A DNA stretch of 5,331 nucleotides from Paramicrosporidium saccamoebae KSL3 (Eukaryota > Fungi > Cryptomycota): positions 6,461 through 11,791 of the forward strand of contig MTSL01000162.1 of assembly GCA_002794465.1 (NCBI GenBank). The letters are read 5' to 3'. The notes beneath the pieces are model-generated. The model saw nothing but the letters and a program-made list of their open reading frames with translations, made no database searches and was not told where the DNA came from. Positions 1 through 5,331 of the stretch are shown piece by piece (the stretch's first letter is position 1; each line of letters starts with the position of its first letter). The position numbers and the translations under genes were made by a program.

Positions 1-456
1 ACTGTTCAGAGGAATATTTTGGAATGGCTTCAACGAATCCCTCTTAGTAACAACATGCCAAACATTGACTTGCTCCAACCATCCCATTTTCTGGAGCATG
101 TTTAGTCTAGATTCGGGAGTCTCCGCCGTAGTACCACAAGTGTCCCAGCTCCATTGCGGAGTGAGAAGCTCTCGTATATGCTCCCCGCACAGAATCGCAC
201 CCCGTCCCTTATACTTTGTTTCATTTGGAAGGCTTGTAATTTTCTCCCAAACGTGACGCTCCGATAGATTGGCTAATGACATTATGCTAGCAACGGTATT
301 ATCATCATCGTGGTCAAAGAGAATATCGAAATTTGTTGTCATATTCGGACCACATTCTTCGGACGGATAGTTGGGCCCAGACCCGCCAAAGGAAGCAGCT
401 GTCGGGTTGACAAGGACGAGGGAAAGGACTAGCCGCGTGAGAGCATTATATCTCAC
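1..456 (-). CDS. 5'-partial gene or start-loss pseudogene, near-identical paralogue of the 4902 gene; runs off the window start
   Basis: 152 open codons from GTG 456-454: VRYNALTRLVLSLVLVNPTAASFGGSGPNYPSEECGPNMTTNFDILFDHDDDNTVASIMSLANLSERHVWEKITSLPNETKYKGRG...VVTKRDSLKPFQNIPLNS. There is an in-frame TGA upstream at 498-496. The first in-frame ATG (342-340) lies after the signal peptide. Confidence 0.75.
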   Translation of the reverse strand, partial: MRYNALTRLVLSLVLVNPTAASFGGSGPNYPSEECGPNMTTNFDILFDHDDDNTVASIMSLANLSERHVWEKITSLPNETKYKGRGAILCGEHIRELLTPQWSWDTCGTTAETPESRLNMLQKMGWLEQVNVWHVVTKRDSLKPFQNIPLNS

Positions 457-593
457 GAGAGAGCCGAAGTGGCGGCCTGTCAGACAGGGTATCGCTCATA
501 CCGTTTTATTAATGCGTTCCAATTGGCTATTTTCCTGTCTATTTAATCGATGCATTTAATTAACTGCAATACCACTGATTAAACATTCCCATG
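42..593. repeat. Left arm of a long inverted repeat (pairs with 4751-5331)
   Basis: 42-217 is the exact reverse complement of 5156-5331 (176 bp). Similarity is clear to ~565 and weaker to ~593 (attaaacattcccat vs attaaatcctcccat). The arm probably extends beyond the window. Confidence 0.97.
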
Positions 594-598
594 TCTAT

Positions 599-661
599 TT
601 TATTAACGTCTTTAATTAGTTGCCCTTGGGCCATCTATAGTCTTTAATAGATCGTTTTATT
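599..661 (-). terminator. Candidate polyadenylation signals of the HECT-like gene
   Basis: AATAAA on the minus strand at 661-656 and 604-599, in an AT-rich stretch ~45 and ~100 nt after the stop codon. Confidence 0.5.
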
Positions 662-704
662 GTAGACTCTATCGTCATTGTTAAATTATTGCCTACTCCT
701 ATCA

Positions 705-3700
705 CTACTGAGAAGAGTTTTCCTGTTCTGTGATCATAATATCAGAAAACAGCTTTTCTCCATTTAGCCAGTGAACAAAGCTCATAAGCATGGCCATCGA
801 AGAATCCGCCTTTGGCACGCTAATCATGAAATGGCAAGTAGTAGTCCTTGTGGGGAAAAATGAGCCATCCGAAGTGGTTTCGGCAGCCAACTGAGCAGCC
901 GGCGGGACACCGAGCATCATGCTCTGGATTTTGGCGGCCTTGCCCATAAATACGATATAATCGAGGCCAGGTTGCAGAACGGGATGGGGATTGTCAATGT
1001 GGCTAACGCCCTTGACGATCGTACCAGGCGGCAGGGCACTCCAGGATTCCTCCTCAGCAATGTTTTCGAGTTGCTCGGGATCTATTACGCGTTTCACTTC
1101 GACTTCCATGACAGGTACAGCACCATCACCACCGGCTTCGGCAGCTCTAATCTCGACCTCCTCCACTACCTGGTTCGATTCGGAAACGCTGTTACCACCA
1201 TGGTCTCCCTCAACAGTCATCGTATGCTTCTCCGAGGCCTTTTCAAAAGAGTAGAAGGCTCTAACATGCTTCTCTGCTTGCACAGGTCTGCTGAATACTA
1301 CCTCAAAGATTTTATCTCCAAGGCGCTTTGCGGAGGATCCCGCCCACATATCGAGAAGTCTTCTTTTTTGCTCTCCATTCGTTGCATACACAAACGACTT
1401 GAACGAATCTACCAACGAAATTTCCACTCCAGGAATCAGCGATTTGACCATAATGTCCTTACCGTCAGCGTCCTGGAAATTTAAAAACTTGGTTACTTCA
1501 AAGATCTGCGCTCCAGTAACATCAGCCGGATTCATGGTCTTCTCGAACAGATTGTAATCCGAAAGGTACTTGAGATTATCCATTTTCAAAGTGTAACTCA
1601 TGCCCTTGTAAACTTCCTGAATAAATGCGGTAAATTCCTGCAACAACTTTGAGCGTAGGGGCTCCATGTATTGACTCTCGACCTCCTCGAGCGTCAGTGC
1701 GACGTCAAGCTCAGCATACTCCCCCAAATTCTTGGTACCAGTCACAAGATTGCTCTTGGCAGTCAATGAATGGAACGTGATAACTTCTAGTTTGAGTGCA
1801 GAAGCATCCTCGAGCAAAGGGCCTGAATAGGTGCAGTCACAGCTATTGCCGTCATGAACAGGACACTGTCTTCCATTTTCCCTGTAGCTTTTGTCTTGCA
1901 TAAAGTCATAGCCAAGGAAGGAACCTGCGAAGGCCTTCAGCTTGCCTTTGTAGGTCTTTGAAAAGTACTCGGAAATCTTTTCCGTAGTAGGGTCGCACAA
2001 CAGGACGAGCAGGGATGGATCAATCAGGAATGCACTTCTCAGTCCTTGCTGGGCGCCTTTGCCTAGGATTGCCCCCAAAGTGCCACCGGCTCCTCTACTA
2101 ATTGCCAACTCTGGGCAACGTGTGATAAAATCATTCTCAGATATTCCACACATGAGCTTAGAGTCAATATGTTTTAACGTGTCAGTGAGTAAGGCTCTCC
2201 TGGGGCCACCAACGTCATTAAATGTTCCAACACTACCTTGATTGTCAGCAATTTTCATGTAATAATTGGCAAAGCGATTGGGTTCAGTGGCAATCTTGGA
2301 GAGAAAATCCTCAATGTTAAATGTGGAGCTGTCAGTATCATAATCAACCGTCAGTATATCGTTGTTTTCTGGGAAGCTAACAAGTAATAGATCCAAGAGT
2401 TCCTTTTCAGTTTCAGCCATAGCATACAAAGCTGGTGCAAGCTCGACGAAATCCCCGAGTGCCGCCATAATTGCCGTACGAGCACCCGAACGGTCTCCAG
2501 TCTCATCACTTTTGAATACACGGTTGATTTGGGCAACGCATTCACGGGCAGCTGGCATTCTGTAGCGGATCATGGCAGAGCAAAAACGAAAAACGTTGCT
2601 TGGAGGGTTGTATAGCTCTACTTCATCTGGATTAGACTGTACGAATGTGTTCAATTCCCCAAAAGCCTCATCTATCATAGAAGCAACCAAGGCGGGTTCG
2701 CTTTCATAGATACTCCTATCATTGATGAATGAATACAGCTGAATAAAGTCGATAAGATTTCCAAGCGGAATCGTAGCATCAGCAAAACTCTCCAAAAGAG
2801 TTTTATAATCACCAAAAGATATCCCTTCCTCAGCAGAGTAGATAGTACCAAAGCTACCTAAAATCTCTTTAATCTCGCGACTCTGGTCCTCAATGTCTTC
2901 CTTGTCTTCATGATATCTTTCAAAAGAGTCAAACAAACTCGCGGTTTCGGGAGCCACATGCTTGAGAATGTTTATGACAGTCTCGTCGGCAGTATTGGCG
3001 GCCATCTTGTTGCGACTCTCACTCAACAGCTTCACAATCGCAAAGGCGTTGCCGGGATTTTCCTGAAGCAACAAATTTACGAGCATTTCCATGCGAATCG
3101 CCATGACAGCTTGTAGGGCGGGTGGCTCCAAACTTCTAGCCACTTCAGCAAAAGCTGTAGCGAGGCTTTCTGCAAGCTCTGGCATCTTTTCGACGACAAA
3201 TGAAATGACGTTAGAGTCCAAAATGAGCCAGTTCAATTTACGGCCGTCGCGGAAGAAATCGTGGGCTATGATTTTATGAAGGCTGCCCGCAGTGGCAGGG
3301 GAAAGACGCGCCATTCCACCGCGAATATTGTCTTGCTCCAACAAAAAACTAAGGACTTCAGGGTCCACTGCTGACCAATATTTCCACGATGCCACGTTCA
3401 GTCCCTTAAACATAGTCAAGTCATCCTTCATGGTAAGGGCGCTCAATCCCGAAACTTTCGGCAAACACCCACTCTTATTTAGTTCTATATATCGGTCCGC
3501 GACTTTGGGAGGGGGAGAACCATCCTCTGGCCACGTCCATTCCTCTTCCATAAGCTGTCGGACATGATCTTCGTTTATAAAGTCACACTTGGAACTCGCT
3601 GCTGCCGAGCATTCTGGACATTGTGCAATATCCCGATAGTTCTTAGGATCACTCATGATAGCCATTCTCATGACACCGCTAATCTCTTCCAAGGGGTATC

Positions 3701-3863
3701 TGAAGAGGTCCAGGCAGTTCAACTCGAGTTTTATCTTGGTATGTGGTCCAGGAGTCTCAAGGCTAGGCCCTCCATGTACTGATGTTGGTTGCCCAACTAA
3801 CGTGCTACACGATGCATACTCAAGACTTAGCGTCAGGAATAGGACAAGTGGTGTCACCATCAT
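705..3863 (-). CDS. Putative secreted protein with a C-terminal divergent HECT-type E3 ubiquitin ligase domain (1052 aa)
   Basis: Uninterrupted 3.16 kb ORF with caaagATG start context and a hydrophobic N-terminus. HECT-like motifs occur in canonical order: D550-VGGPRR (cf. DxGGxxRE), L596-GAILGKG (cf. GxxxGxA), F821-KSFVYATNGEQKRRLLDMWAGSS (cf. FWxxxxxxxxExRxxLLxFxTGSS) and PTRTTTC1010HFMISVP (cf. PTSHTCFNxLxLP). Confidence 0.85.
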   Translation of the reverse strand: MMVTPLVLFLTLSLEYASCSTLVGQPTSVHGGPSLETPGPHTKIKLELNCLDLFRYPLEEISGVMRMAIMSDPKNYRDIAQCPECSAAASSKCDFINEDHVRQLMEEEWTWPEDGSPPPKVADRYIELNKSGCLPKVSGLSALTMKDDLTMFKGLNVASWKYWSAVDPEVLSFLLEQDNIRGGMARLSPATAGSLHKIIAHDFFRDGRKLNWLILDSNVISFVVEKMPELAESLATAFAEVARSLEPPALQAVMAIRMEMLVNLLLQENPGNAFAIVKLLSESRNKMAANTADETVINILKHVAPETASLFDSFERYHEDKEDIEDQSREIKEILGSFGTIYSAEEGISFGDYKTLLESFADATIPLGNLIDFIQLYSFINDRSIYESEPALVASMIDEAFGELNTFVQSNPDEVELYNPPSNVFRFCSAMIRYRMPAARECVAQINRVFKSDETGDRSGARTAIMAALGDFVELAPALYAMAETEKELLDLLLVSFPENNDILTVDYDTDSSTFNIEDFLSKIATEPNRFANYYMKIADNQGSVGTFNDVGGPRRALLTDTLKHIDSKLMCGISENDFITRCPELAISRGAGGTLGAILGKGAQQGLRSAFLIDPSLLVLLCDPTTEKISEYFSKTYKGKLKAFAGSFLGYDFMQDKSYRENGRQCPVHDGNSCDCTYSGPLLEDASALKLEVITFHSLTAKSNLVTGTKNLGEYAELDVALTLEEVESQYMEPLRSKLLQEFTAFIQEVYKGMSYTLKMDNLKYLSDYNLFEKTMNPADVTGAQIFEVTKFLNFQDADGKDIMVKSLIPGVEISLVDSFKSFVYATNGEQKRRLLDMWAGSSAKRLGDKIFEVVFSRPVQAEKHVRAFYSFEKASEKHTMTVEGDHGGNSVSESNQVVEEVEIRAAEAGGDGAVPVMEVEVKRVIDPEQLENIAEEESWSALPPGTIVKGVSHIDNPHPVLQPGLDYIVFMGKAAKIQSMMLGVPPAAQLAAETTSDGSFFPTRTTTCHFMISVPKADSSMAMLMSFVHWLNGEKLFSDIMITEQENSSQ
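747..2246 (-). other. HECT-like domain (aa ~540-1039) with an insertion in the C-lobe
   Basis: Four ordered HECT motifs. Cys1010 has Pro at +7 and Phe at +29 (F1039), the same spacing as the catalytic Cys, LxLP proline and conserved C-terminal Phe in NEDD4/E6AP as recalled. Confidence 0.75.
3804..3863 (-). other. Predicted signal peptide (aa ~1-20)
   Basis: MMVTPLVLFLTLSLEYASCS has a hydrophobic core followed by small residues (A-S-C-S) resembling a cleavage site. Judged by eye, not predicted computationally. Confidence 0.7.
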
Positions 3864-4066
3864 CTTTGCAAGAATTCTCGTCGACCAGGGTTAGCAGCTG
3901 CTTAAACCAGATGGGGAGGGGGCCAAAATCCCTGAAGTGTCAAAGGCCTTATGAGGTCTATAGTAACAACCCTGGTAGTTGACCCAAAAAGATTTTTTAA
4001 TAAACGTGTGGTTGTGAGGTTGGTTTGGATGGATGTAGAGGCCCTGTTAAACAGCACTCACTTATC

Positions 4067-4071
4067 ATTGG
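4067..4071 (-). promoter_or_regulatory. Possible CCAAT box upstream of the HECT-like gene
   Basis: ATTGG on the plus strand, ~204 nt upstream of ATG 3863. A short motif that could occur by chance. Confidence 0.25.
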
Positions 4072-4810
4072 TGGGTCCGGCCCAGATAGCGATCCCACAA
4101 TCAATCCTTGTTATATTATGAGGTAGCGGAATATTTAGCTAGGTGCTTGTCCGAATATGAAATGAAGAGTCAAGGAGTGAAATAAAACAGAATGTCCGGC
4201 TTTTCAAGGCTTGATCACATCGACACTATACCGGCGAGTCCATGAAAACCAGTAATAAAGTATTCCTTGTCGCTCATATATACTGACATTGTGGTGTCGC
4301 GTAGTGGGGGTAATACCACGGACTTTCAGGTGAGACAAAATGATAACTCGTTCACTGGTGCACTCTTGATCTAACGACACATTTATAGTTTTACAAATAA
4401 CATGATGATCCTAAAATATTTAGCTGGTCAATCCTCTGCGTCCCAAAGGCATCACAGGCTTTAGTAAGACTGATTTGTTCATCAACAGGCCATTTGTCCC
4501 TGATCCGTGGGCGTGGTATGCCACACTATCTCTGTGATGCAACCATAAGTAGCAGGGGAAGGTGCCACGGAAAAACTCATATAAAAAGAGGAGTTGTCCA
4601 CTGGTAATAACTGAATAGTAAAGTTGCAGATCCCACTGTCCCCCTTTGGATTTCCCAAACTGGAGAATCCTCCTCAAATACCCAGCCAATCAATTCATTC
4701 TACCCCAAAAGAGTTCTATAGACCCCATATTCGCGACCATGGCCCTATGGATGGGAGGATTTAATAGCGTATAATTGATTAACTGCATCGATCAAATAGA
4801 CACGGAATAG

Positions 4811-4837
4811 CCAATCAGTGATGCCTCAACCAATTGG
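4811..4837 (+). promoter_or_regulatory. Two CCAAT boxes upstream of the 4902 gene
   Basis: CCAATCAG at 4811 (NF-Y-like) and CCAATTGG at 4830, about 70-90 nt before the ATG. The left arm keeps only one (519-526). Confidence 0.45.
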
Positions 4838-4901
4838 AGTGCATCGATGAAACAGTTTAAGAGCACTGCCCTGTCTGGCAAGCCACCACTTTGACCAGCT
4901 C

Positions 4902-5331
4902 ATGAAGTATAGCGCTTTCACACGACTAGTCCTTCCCCTCATCCTTGTCGACCCGACAGCTGCTTCTTTTGGTGGACCTGGGTCCAACTATCCGTCCGTC
5001 CGTCCACCGTCTGAAGAATGTGGTCTGAATATGACAGTAGATCTCGATACTCTCTTTGACCACGATGACGATAATGCCGTCGCTAGCATAATGTCATTAG
5101 CCAATCTCTCGGAGCGTCGCGTTTGGGAGGAAATTACAAGCCTTCCAAATGAAAAAAAGTATAAGGGACGGGGTGCGATTCTGTGCGGGGAGCATATACG
5201 AGAGCTTCTCACTCCGCAATGGAGCTGGGACACTTGTGGTACTACGGCGGAGACTCCCGAATCTAGACTAAACATGCTCCAGAAAATGGGATGGTTGGAG
5301 CAAGTCAATGTTTGGCATGTTGTTACTAAGA
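4902..5331 (+). CDS. 5'-partial gene for a putative secreted protein, paralogue of the central gene; runs off the window end
   Basis: 143 open codons from ATG 4902 (upstream in-frame TGA at 4848-4850): MKYSAFTRLVLPLILVDPTAASFGGPGSNYPSVRPPSEECGLNMTVDLDTLFDHDDDNAVASIMSLANLSERRVWEEITSLPNEKKYKGRGAILCGEHIRELLTPQWSWDTCGTTAETPESRLNMLQKMGWLEQVNVWHVVTK. It has a signal-like N-terminus and aligns with aa ~44-145 of the central protein. It is absent from the ORF track, presumably because it has no stop in the window. Confidence 0.85.
   Translation, partial: MKYSAFTRLVLPLILVDPTAASFGGPGSNYPSVRPPSEECGLNMTVDLDTLFDHDDDNAVASIMSLANLSERRVWEEITSLPNEKKYKGRGAILCGEHIRELLTPQWSWDTCGTTAETPESRLNMLQKMGWLEQVNVWHVVTK

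Follow-up and report, generated by a model that had tools for sequence, protein, structure and literature searches.

Inverted truncated paralogues flanking a divergent HECT-type gene in Paramicrosporidium saccamoebae: incidental duplication with concerted evolution as the favored explanation

The 5,331-nt stretch of DNA analyzed here (the window) comes from Paramicrosporidium saccamoebae (PMC5701793), an intranuclear parasite of amoebae belonging to the Rozellomycota, and displays two outward-facing copies of a gene in inverted orientation with a complete related gene between them. We regard it as likely that this arrangement is an incidental inverted gene duplication undergoing concerted evolution in a fast-evolving family. 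The cluster to which these genes belong is lineage-specific and combines signal-peptide-like starts, an armadillo-like solenoid and a divergent HECT domain; its proteins are predicted from sequence to be secreted. The initial annotation had read the window as a possible invertible cassette in which a crossover would switch expression between two gene bodies. The geometry it described, namely outward-facing copies, a shared perfect tract and a swap upon crossover, stands, whereas the expression switch lacks support, as both modules keep a conserved upstream block.

The inverted arms, their genes and their boundaries

The inverted repeat comprises ~520 nt per arm. Its main part (42-366 and 5007-5331) spans 325 nt at 96% identity and is extended inward by 141 nt at 80% identity (360-500 and 4858-4998), with similarity continuing through upstream motifs to about 563 and 4775; the repeat as a whole is far above chance. 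The outermost 176 nt are identical (42-217 in the left arm, partnered with 5156-5331 in the right, where the tract ends exactly at the scaffold end); this perfect tract sits 3' of both starts and amounts to a run of 201 nt once the abutting scaffold MTSL01000075.1 (scaffold 75) is counted. Both arms represent outward-facing ORFs, 84% identical as protein, which bears out the earlier description of outward-facing paralogues with near-identical 5' coding regions. In contrast, the segment between them is no unique spacer, as had been supposed, but carries a complete 1052-aa paralogue on the minus strand (705-3863). The divergent intergenic region from the start of this central gene to the upstream block of the right copy (3864-4774) gave no convincing match when searched for genes, tRNA and Rfam families.

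The source assembly consists of short-read Velvet scaffolds built from 80-nt reads with k=53, too short to phase across the 201-nt perfect tract. The window makes up the terminal portion, devoid of gaps, of one such scaffold and is, in the scaffold numbering as reported (L001), the reverse complement of MTSL01000162.1 bases 1-5331. The scaffold terminates at position 5331, and 168 Ns adjoin position 1; the right arm runs up to the scaffold terminus and the left arm stops 41 nt short of the gap. It is because the window is cut at these two points that the copies had seemed to share only their 5' ends: the homology covers the entire ~1.3-kb genes together with ~110 nt of 3' flank. The body of the right copy was found at the end of MTSL01000075.1 (L003 1-772), which, judged by the left copy sequence, adjoins the window end within 1 nt; from its position 1, L003 follows the left copy sequence for 24 identical nucleotides before a SNP, and the right copy frame remains open on it for 256 codons. 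This scaffold end carries a prenyltransferase, a 1528-aa gene and the right copy body. In relatives, the gene order is a prenyltransferase, a large gene, family genes and then an oxysterol-binding-protein gene, and joining MTSL01000075.1 to the window end would fit that order. The locus would then read: prenyltransferase, 1528-aa HECT-like gene (+), right copy (-), central 1052-aa gene (+), left copy (+), 1046-aa gene (+) and two short members (+).

The 5' part of the right copy (4902-5331, plus strand; 143 codons and 1 nt) breaks off where the scaffold stops and is resumed in frame on MTSL01000075.1. It has an ATG at 4902, a signal-peptide-like N-terminus and the family N-terminal module, with 42% identity to residues 1-156 of the 1046-aa gene (g1046). 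The 5' part of the left copy (1-456, minus strand; 152 codons) is cut by the 168-N gap and continues on L001 at 5500-5881 and 6074-6220, its body being interrupted by two N gaps. Relative to the right copy it has a 15-nt in-frame deletion, and at the codon where the family has ATG it has GTG (454-456, minus strand), the first in-frame ATG occurring only at codon 39. Further, a 17-codon out-of-frame upstream ORF starting with ATG overlaps this GTG (446-499, minus strand); the right copy lacks it, having TAAG where the left copy has TATG. The initial annotation was accurate on both the ATG/GTG difference and the overlapping ORF. The loss of its ATG and the new upstream ATG give the left copy the look of early pseudogene decay, and, judging by its start region, its translation into a secreted protein has probably ceased. 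However, this copy is not an old pseudogene, because its frame is open in all assembled pieces and one of these (piece C) has a dN/dS of about 0.16; its stop lies at the site homologous to the right copy stop, 8 codons earlier. Both arms are 38-42% identical to the first 170 residues of the 1046-aa gene. The left copy matches residues 1-171, 185-305 and 379-406 of that gene in collinear order and then ends. By these alignments, the two copies are ~400-aa truncated relatives that comprise the N-terminal and solenoid part without the HECT domain.

The upstream region of the left copy (457-563, minus strand) contains a conserved block, CCAATTGGAACGCATTAATAAAAC...CCCTGTCTGACAGGCC, and next to it an AT-rich ATCGAT/TAATTAA motif is present as a tandem duplicate (529-567 and 585-623). 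The upstream region of the right copy (4775-4901, plus strand) has the same block along with a 24-nt insertion. Within this insertion lies the additional CCAAT motif that accounts for two in the right copy as against one in the left, counts that had been given correctly. The block kept by both copies is ~85 nt long and occurs at four genes on the scaffold, namely both copies and two more; in it, CCAATTGG lies some 72 nt ahead of the start and is followed by ...CCTGTCTGRC.... The promoter asymmetry proposed earlier is, accordingly, weaker than first described: the start codons and CCAAT motifs differ, but the conserved block is common to both modules. As each module has this block within the invertible portion, a flip would not redirect a single promoter.

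The HECT-type fold of the central gene

The central gene (705-3863, minus strand), annotated as a P. saccamoebae hypothetical protein, aligns with the 1046-aa gene at 25% identity across 994 aa (E 2e-81). Its product has an N-terminus that resembles a signal peptide, an armadillo-like alpha-solenoid and, at about residues 500-1052 (window 708-2366, minus strand), a divergent E3 ligase domain of the HECT type. Family profile matches point to both of the latter parts, with the AREL1 HECT (E 2.6e-5) and the TOM1 HECT (E 7e-5) on one side and designed armadillo proteins (E 4e-8) on the other. On the strength of the AF2 model (pLDDT 76.5, pTM 0.74), the C-terminal half is a bilobed HECT fold: the top 50 Foldseek matches in the PDB are all HECT ligases with probabilities of 0.98-1.00, and the TM-scores normalized to isolated HECT domains are 0.30-0.52. 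A search with Pfam PF00632 gave no match to the central protein, while its relatives reach 22.1-23.7 bits, below the gathering score of 23.9.

HECT domains have their catalytic cysteine in a T-C-x-x setting, ~35 residues before the C-terminus, with a strand and a helix after it. In the central protein, the candidate for this residue is Cys1010 (codon at 834-836, minus strand), which is 42 residues from the C-terminus, is conserved across no fewer than 90% of 24 members of the family and is followed in the AF2 model by a strand (1013-1017) and a helix (1022-1033). The motifs DxGGPxR, GKAxQ, WTGS and TCxxxxxxP characterize the family, which is represented by only a few genes in the P. saccamoebae genome and by 59 relatives among 1.84 billion representative proteins. 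From the modeled fold and these sequence features, the central gene product is a putative ligase. It shares its C-terminal HECT fold with Tom1/HUWE1, UBR5, E6AP, HACE1 and NEDD4, and, like HUWE1 and HACE1, has an alpha-solenoid N-terminal to the HECT domain. Unlike the canonical cytosolic HECT ligases, it has a signal-peptide-like N-terminus; it also departs from known HECT ligases in an acidic, low-confidence C-lobe insertion of ~90 residues (869-959) and in a sequence too divergent for the Pfam HECT threshold.

Patchwork identity and competing explanations

In the 5' piece, the right and left copies show 29 differences in 415 nt, all within the first 239 nt; a 201-nt perfect run follows, a length reached in 0 of 20000 permutations. 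Likewise, piece B of the bodies is 79.8% identical with a dN/dS of about 1, and its perfect run of 69 nt was also reached in 0 of 20000 permutations. Over the whole gene, perfect tracts of 201 nt, 69 nt and about 50 nt, which Velvet bubble merging may have inflated, lie amid patches that are 60-80% identical; such merging can remove isolated differences between two-copy repeats. Given a dS between the copies of ~0.23 in unconverted stretches, the perfect tract should contain ~10 synonymous differences, but it has none. The runs of identity thus go beyond the expected divergence, synonymous sites included. Because perfect and diverged tracts alternate, the arms have recombined with each other, and gene conversion is the probable source of the mosaic. 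It had been pointed out that a flip would change nothing were the two genes identical to their 3' ends, and an extension of the window had been suggested as a check; once extended, the bodies are seen to differ (piece B, as above), diverging in patches while homology persists.

Briefly, we advance the following likely course of events. A ~400-aa truncated member would have been duplicated as a whole gene, inverted, across the full-length 1052-aa member, with the duplicated unit taking in the ~110-nt promoter-proximal block and the 3' flank. Since then the copies have probably exchanged patches repeatedly through homologous recombination (gene conversion), and the left copy has lost its ATG to GTG and acquired the upstream ATG that is out of frame. 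Crossing over between the arms would invert a 4.9-kb segment and swap the 5' modules between the two bodies; such crossovers probably happen occasionally, as a by-product, and no observation points to selection for switching. The hypervariable patches of piece B, given their dN/dS of about 1, are compatible with selection for variation. None of the syntenic clusters in the relatives at hand, which are distant (25-32% identity), has the inverted layout, and this would indicate only that the layout is not ancient.

An alternative that we consider unlikely is that the left copy is an unexpressed archive that gives patches to the right copy without inversion, by analogy resembling the pseudogene-templated variation of other parasites. 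A copy devoid of an ATG with an intact body is also how a silent cassette would appear, and the dN/dS of about 1 in the variable patch would suit such a role, as would the alternation of perfect and strongly diverged tracts; yet one donor yields almost no diversity, and any young pair of inverted duplicates will passively develop a pattern of this kind.

Quite unlikely, in our estimate, is the switch originally envisaged, wherein a translatable 5' module (promoter block, ATG and signal peptide) in the invertible 4.9-kb segment is joined alternately to two variant bodies by homologous crossover in the identical tract, such that the parasite switches back and forth between a pair of variant secreted solenoid proteins. 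The outward-facing copies share, 3' of both starts, at least 176 nt of perfect identity (201 nt once scaffold 75 is included), and the arms demonstrably recombine; however, the homology extends along the entire gene and is not confined to a 5' region dedicated to recombination. The ATG is found only in the right module, with the left having an additional upstream ATG, but the conserved block on both modules leaves no single promoter. The bodies differ, with piece B as described, and the left one is still open; still, there are only two cassettes, and neither copy is annotated despite the use of RNA-seq in the annotation. The species has meiosis and recombination genes (PMC5701793). Against the switch, the segment carries an independent full-length gene, the layout is absent from syntenic loci of relatives, and the amoeba host presumably lacks adaptive immunity, so that the usual rationale for antigen switching would be missing.

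It is very unlikely that Velvet mis-resolved a repeat in metagenomic short-read data and thereby made the inverted repeat or the arm linkage, with the true genome holding the copies elsewhere or in another orientation. The arms do occupy the two extremities of a single stretch free of gaps, with the scaffold end on one side and an N gap on the other, but their inner 240-350 nt clearly differ (88% identity in coding and 57-80% in upstream sequence, with 15-nt and 24-nt indels). As these distinct inner arms are each contiguous with the unique 4.3-kb middle, the two inverted copies flanking the central gene are directly assembled. The 80-nt reads at k=53 cannot span the 201-nt perfect tract, and two N gaps break the left copy body; nonetheless, a distinct second body on scaffold 75 abuts within 1 nt, synteny agrees with the scaffold join, and only the phase past the perfect tract, i.e., which body follows which arm, rests on read pairs.

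Site-specific invertase switches use short inverted recognition sites and a nearby serine or tyrosine recombinase, and a switch of the Hin/Gin or FimB/E type is rejected, as the arms are gene-length paralogues rather than short sites and no recombinase domain was found in the ORFs of the window or scaffold (Pfam; called genes), in agreement with the initial annotation.

Comparison with known systems

In the sap locus of Campylobacter fetus, a RecA-dependent inversion decides which of two homologues facing opposite ways is placed behind the lone sapA promoter; the locus has one promoter, 8-9 cassettes and complete divergence after the 5' conserved region. The present locus shares with it the outward homologues, a conserved 5' tract, a several-kb segment with other genes and the lack of a site-specific recombinase, because of which homologous recombination would be the mechanism. 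It differs in having two cassettes, a promoter-like block at each copy and whole-gene homology: in place of a single promoter on the segment, the CCAATTGG block precedes both copies, their start codons being ATG and GTG, and instead of being unrelated 3' of the shared tract, the homologues show mosaic homology over the whole gene and the 3' flank.

The view that a eukaryotic version would be unusual overlooks the UCS/CRJE expression site of Pneumocystis (PMC10622565). There, the UCS, with a single promoter, serves msg-I genes, about 80 of which have in common the 33-bp CRJE. The donors, numbering in the dozens, are subtelomeric, the junction element is short and dedicated to that role, and the expressed repertoires have been demonstrated by experiment. 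The likeness extends to a eukaryotic parasite of the fungal lineage with a mosaic family, in which a constant 5' leader could join different bodies at a shared coding tract by homologous recombination. The present case differs in having two copies with a promoter block on both. Rather than a Pneumocystis-type expression site, we see the upstream block at four scaffold genes and the tract in only two bodies, and a search for further donors sharing the tract beyond these two found none.

A further parallel is NemLGF2 of Nematocida displodere, one of the expanded signal-peptide families of microsporidia, with C-terminal RING domains (PMC4928854). Like it, the P. saccamoebae family is species-specific, clustered and rapidly diverging in a parasite of the Rozellomycota-Microsporidia lineage, and combines predicted signal peptides and a ubiquitin-ligase-type domain with some truncated members; it differs in having HECT in place of RING, in its small size and in its unrelated sequences.

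Young inverted duplicates undergoing gene conversion likewise feature two whole-gene inverted copies a few kb apart, patchy identity with long perfect runs in 10-40% diverged sequence and one copy gaining disabling changes. Such concerted evolution of inverted paralogues is seen in the palindromic gene pairs of many eukaryotic genomes. Unlike ordinary inverted duplicates, the pair described here brackets a paralogue of the same superfamily, within an intracellular parasite's cluster of secreted-type ligase genes.

A gene family with a divergent HECT-type fold

Bases 1–5331 of the NCBI scaffold MTSL01000162.1 (11,791 bp; GCA_002794465.1), reverse-complemented, make up the window, with position 5331 at the scaffold end and position 1 as the final base ahead of a run of 168 Ns; the MTSL accession prefix is that of the genome paper on P. 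saccamoebae, an intranuclear parasite of amoebae (PMC5701793). What the initial annotation took for a unique spacer between two outward-facing copies carries a complete 1052-aa gene (705–3863, minus strand), itself a paralogue from the same family. Its product shares 25% identity across 994 residues with that of a neighbouring 1046-aa gene of the scaffold (PSACC_02458 of Paramicrosporidium saccamoebae), and both arms match the first 170 residues of the latter at 38–42% identity; therefore, all three elements of the window belong to one family. In scaffold orientation, the order is: the right copy (minus strand); the central 1052-aa gene (plus); the left copy (plus), interrupted by two N gaps; the 1046-aa gene (plus); and two short members (plus), 163 and 137 aa long, with repeated 3′ flanks in common. 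These short genes are annotated at positions 10044–10535 and 11134–11547 of the scaffold (locus L001), and each combines the family upstream block, a signal peptide and the N-terminal module with an acidic tail. Both also share the 3′ flank found at the 1046-aa gene (repeats at L001 9833–9920, 10618–10704 and 11630–11681), and the pair resemble tandem copies of a full-length member that have undergone internal deletion. Scanning the entire scaffold for Rfam families and tRNAs gave no match.

With the three window proteins, no Pfam or NCBIfam model was significant, and a word-based homologue search returned only the central gene itself for the central gene and nothing for the 143 aa of the right copy; starting from the 1046-aa gene gave a single outside relative. 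A metagenome scan with the N-terminal module matched 117 patterns and gave zero relatives. Searching 1.84 billion representative proteins with a profile recovered 59 relatives, those with a checked source coming from P. saccamoebae (NCBI), SRA-run assemblies (Logan) and JGI/IMG metagenomes. A three-sequence profile gave insignificant matches only against the PDB, while a 24-member family profile matches AREL1 and TOM1 in their HECT domains (E 2.6e-5 and 7.2e-5, respectively), and its N-terminal part matches designed armadillo-repeat proteins (E 4e-8). Further, the Pfam HECT model scores 23.7 and 22.1 bits on two relatives against a cutoff of 23.9, and UniRef names one P. saccamoebae relative “HECT domain-containing protein”. 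An AlphaFold2 model of the central protein (pLDDT 76.5, pTM 0.74) was compared with the PDB using Foldseek, and the top 50 matches are HECT ligases (Tom1, UBR5, HUWE1, E6AP, HACE1 and NEDD4). The family motifs are DxGGPxR, GKAxQ, WTGS and TCxxxxxxP, and the cysteine C1010, 42 residues short of the C-terminus, is conserved in at least 90% of the members.

Taken together, the profile matches, the Foldseek results and the motifs point to the central gene product as a predicted divergent HECT-type ligase, and, as signal-peptide-like N-termini recur across the family, it is presumably secreted. This family unites an armadillo-like solenoid with a divergent HECT fold and is annotated only as hypothetical; its members are candidates for secreted ubiquitin ligases in parasites of the Rozellomycota. 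With signal-peptide-like N-termini and the fold of a HECT ligase, these otherwise unannotated proteins could act on the host ubiquitin system from within the amoeba nucleus, a hypothesis paralleled by the RING-domain NemLGF2 family of Nematocida. The central protein also displays an acidic insertion of about 90 residues (869–959; window 987–1259, minus strand) with pLDDT below 50, which separates a region resembling the HECT N-lobe from the C-terminal lobe bearing C1010; such an insertion is unusual for HECT domains.

The inverted copies, their starts and their missing half

The inverted repeat and the outward-running reading frames described in the initial annotation are both borne out. The arms (42–366 and 5007–5331) are 96% identical, with homology continuing at 80% through 360–500 and 4858–4998 and then into the upstream motifs. 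The difference in starts is likewise seen in the sequence: the right copy opens with an ATG at 4902, whereas the left copy has a GTG at the homologous codon, a 15-nt in-frame deletion and an overlapping, out-of-frame upstream ORF of 17 codons, created where it reads TATG against TAAG in the right copy. Rescue of the left start by an intron, using a GTGAGA splice donor after the upstream ATG, was checked by hand and rejected on mismatched frames. All 29 coding differences between the arms fall within the first 239 nt, and the last 176 nt are identical. We also set aside diploid alleles, as both copies lie on one contig around unique sequence, and a transposon with terminal inverted repeats, as the arms are outward genes extending past the repeat ends visible in the window and the middle gene is HECT-like rather than a transposase.

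A conserved block of about 85 nt lies 5′ of the right copy (window 4825–4901, plus strand), the left copy (457–532, minus strand) and both short members (L001 9970–10043 and 11062–11133), four genes whose products all start MKY; within it, the palindrome CCAATTGG stands a constant distance of about 72 nt ahead of the start codon. A weaker form precedes the 1046-aa gene, and a similar block (70–145) precedes the family gene of L004, an environmental relative with about 50% protein identity. The block is probably a family-specific promoter or 5′-UTR element. The proposed promoter asymmetry thus holds only in part: a second CCAAT does lie in a 24-nt insertion of the right copy, but the conserved block is present on both copies. 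Two CCAAT motifs also occur at the 1046-aa gene. Between the left upstream block and the stop of the central gene, a 39-nt AT-rich motif with a TAATTAA/ATCGAT core stands in tandem (529–567 and 585–623); the right copy has a single one (4775–4807). In L004 (JGI metagenome 3300042205), an in-frame TAA at 503–505 interrupts the conserved N-terminal module, after which homology resumes, reflecting either a pseudogene or a sequencing error.

The remainder of the right copy appears to lie on another scaffold. The end of MTSL01000075.1 of the same assembly (locus L003), within 217 nt of which the 184-aa relative P0041 is encoded, starts with GGATTCGTTGAAGCCATTCCAAAAC, and in the left copy that sequence begins 1 nt past the point at which the right arm stops. 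This scaffold end equals the left copy for 24 nt, followed by a SNP, and the frame from the last codon of the window continues on it, open for 256 codons. The join is supported by synteny: in relatives (loci L005, L006 and L008) family genes, all co-oriented, lie between a prenyltransferase plus a large gene and an oxysterol-binding-protein gene, and the end of scaffold 75 presents a prenyltransferase, then a 1528-aa gene that in its last exon matches the family HECT region (E 4.5e-22), and the body of the right copy in inverted orientation. Thus, by sequence and gene order, the ends of scaffolds 162 and 75 are most likely genomic neighbours with one base missing between them, left unjoined most likely because of a 201-nt repeat, and joining them would improve the assembly. 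This makes the right copy the only inverted gene in an array whose other members are co-oriented; an inverted copy was found in none of L005, L006 and L008, which are distant (25–32% identity). The sole annotated part of either arm gene is the P0041 model (L003 218–772), starting at an internal Met; no model covers the 5′ parts within the window or any of the left copy.

At full length, both copies encode about 400 aa collinear with residues 1–406 of the 1046-aa protein, with stops at homologous positions, and so are without the C-terminal half of the family; the arms encode solenoid-only, shortened relatives. As homology runs along the whole genes and about 110 nt of 3′ flank, the earlier description of paralogues sharing their 5′ ends is an effect of where the window was cut.

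Patchwise identity and its possible origins

Extending the comparison beyond the window, as the initial annotation had proposed, revealed bodies that differ in a mosaic. The copies are 57% identical upstream (about 80% in the conserved block), 88% over the first 239 nt of the CDS and perfectly so over the next 201 nt; then come a stretch (piece B) in which tracts of 52, 69 and about 40 nt are perfect and the patches around them 60–75% identical, and another (piece C) at 91%. Neither the 201-nt nor the 69-nt run was reached in 20,000 permutations of variable sites. With a dS of about 0.23 in the unconverted parts, roughly ten synonymous differences are expected in the perfect tract, and it has zero; the dN/dS ratio varies from piece to piece, at 0.47 (5′ piece), 1.05 (piece B) and 0.16 (piece C). 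We read this mosaic as the product of repeated gene conversion between inverted duplicates.

These figures come from an assembly made from a metagenome with Velvet (k=53) and Illumina reads trimmed to 80 nt (PMC5701793), so perfect repeats longer than about 80 nt are unresolvable by single reads. Of the layout, only the phase beyond the perfect tract depends on read pairs. The left-copy gaps (L001 5332–5499, 168 Ns; 5883–6073, 191 Ns) have counterparts of 40 nt (L003 36–75) and 148 nt (458–605) in the right copy; the stated gap lengths are only rough, and the perfect paralogue tracts adjoining them probably broke the assembly graph. Bubble merging in Velvet can remove isolated differences between two-copy repeats, and hence the perfect tracts are perhaps slightly less than perfect.

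We consider it likely that a whole gene was duplicated in inverted orientation within a birth-and-death cluster, that gene conversion has kept the two copies partly homogeneous, and that the left copy is beginning to decay through the ATG-to-GTG change and the new upstream ATG. Conversion-linked crossovers would invert the 4.9-kb segment and swap 5′ modules as a by-product. If this ordinary reading is true, the locus offers a clear case of growth and reshuffling in the candidate effector family of a parasite, with genes duplicated in tandem and in inverted orientation, truncated, and converted patch by patch.

Against such inverted duplication with conversion, a silent-donor conversion model appears improbable. 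The invertible expression cassette of the initial annotation seems about as improbable as a programmed device: it would have the 4.9-kb segment flip by homologous crossover between the inverted paralogues, alternately joining the sole translatable 5′ module (promoter block, ATG and signal peptide) to two variant solenoid bodies; whichever body lay behind the module lacking an ATG would be kept silent by it. Its geometry is sound, and it survives one of its own tests because the gene bodies differ rather than being identical to their 3′ ends; nevertheless, the locus has no single promoter and only two cassettes, and the layout is not conserved in relatives, distant as these are at 25–32% identity. 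Were it true, it would be a rare eukaryotic instance of expression switching by inversion via homologous recombination, and a counterpart in eukaryotes to the sap inversion of Campylobacter fetus. An assembly artefact as the source of the repeat itself is unlikely, and a hairpin or chimeric one can be set aside, since substitutions and indels of 15 and 24 nt distinguish the two inner arms, each of which runs directly into unique sequence.

Comparison with known systems

In its behaviour, the locus is like a pair of young inverted duplicates undergoing concerted evolution. The Campylobacter fetus sap system is defined by a single promoter and by divergence after a conserved 5′ region; its layout is like the present one, but neither of these features, both of which we tested, is found here. 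A closer eukaryotic precedent is the UCS/CRJE expression site of Pneumocystis, in which bodies are swapped behind a constant leader, although its single-copy promoter and many donors have no equivalent at this locus (PMC10622565). NemLGF2 of Nematocida is, like the present family, signal-peptide-bearing with a ubiquitin-ligase-type domain, but that domain is a RING rather than a HECT and the sequences are unrelated (PMC4928854). All three are resemblances only.
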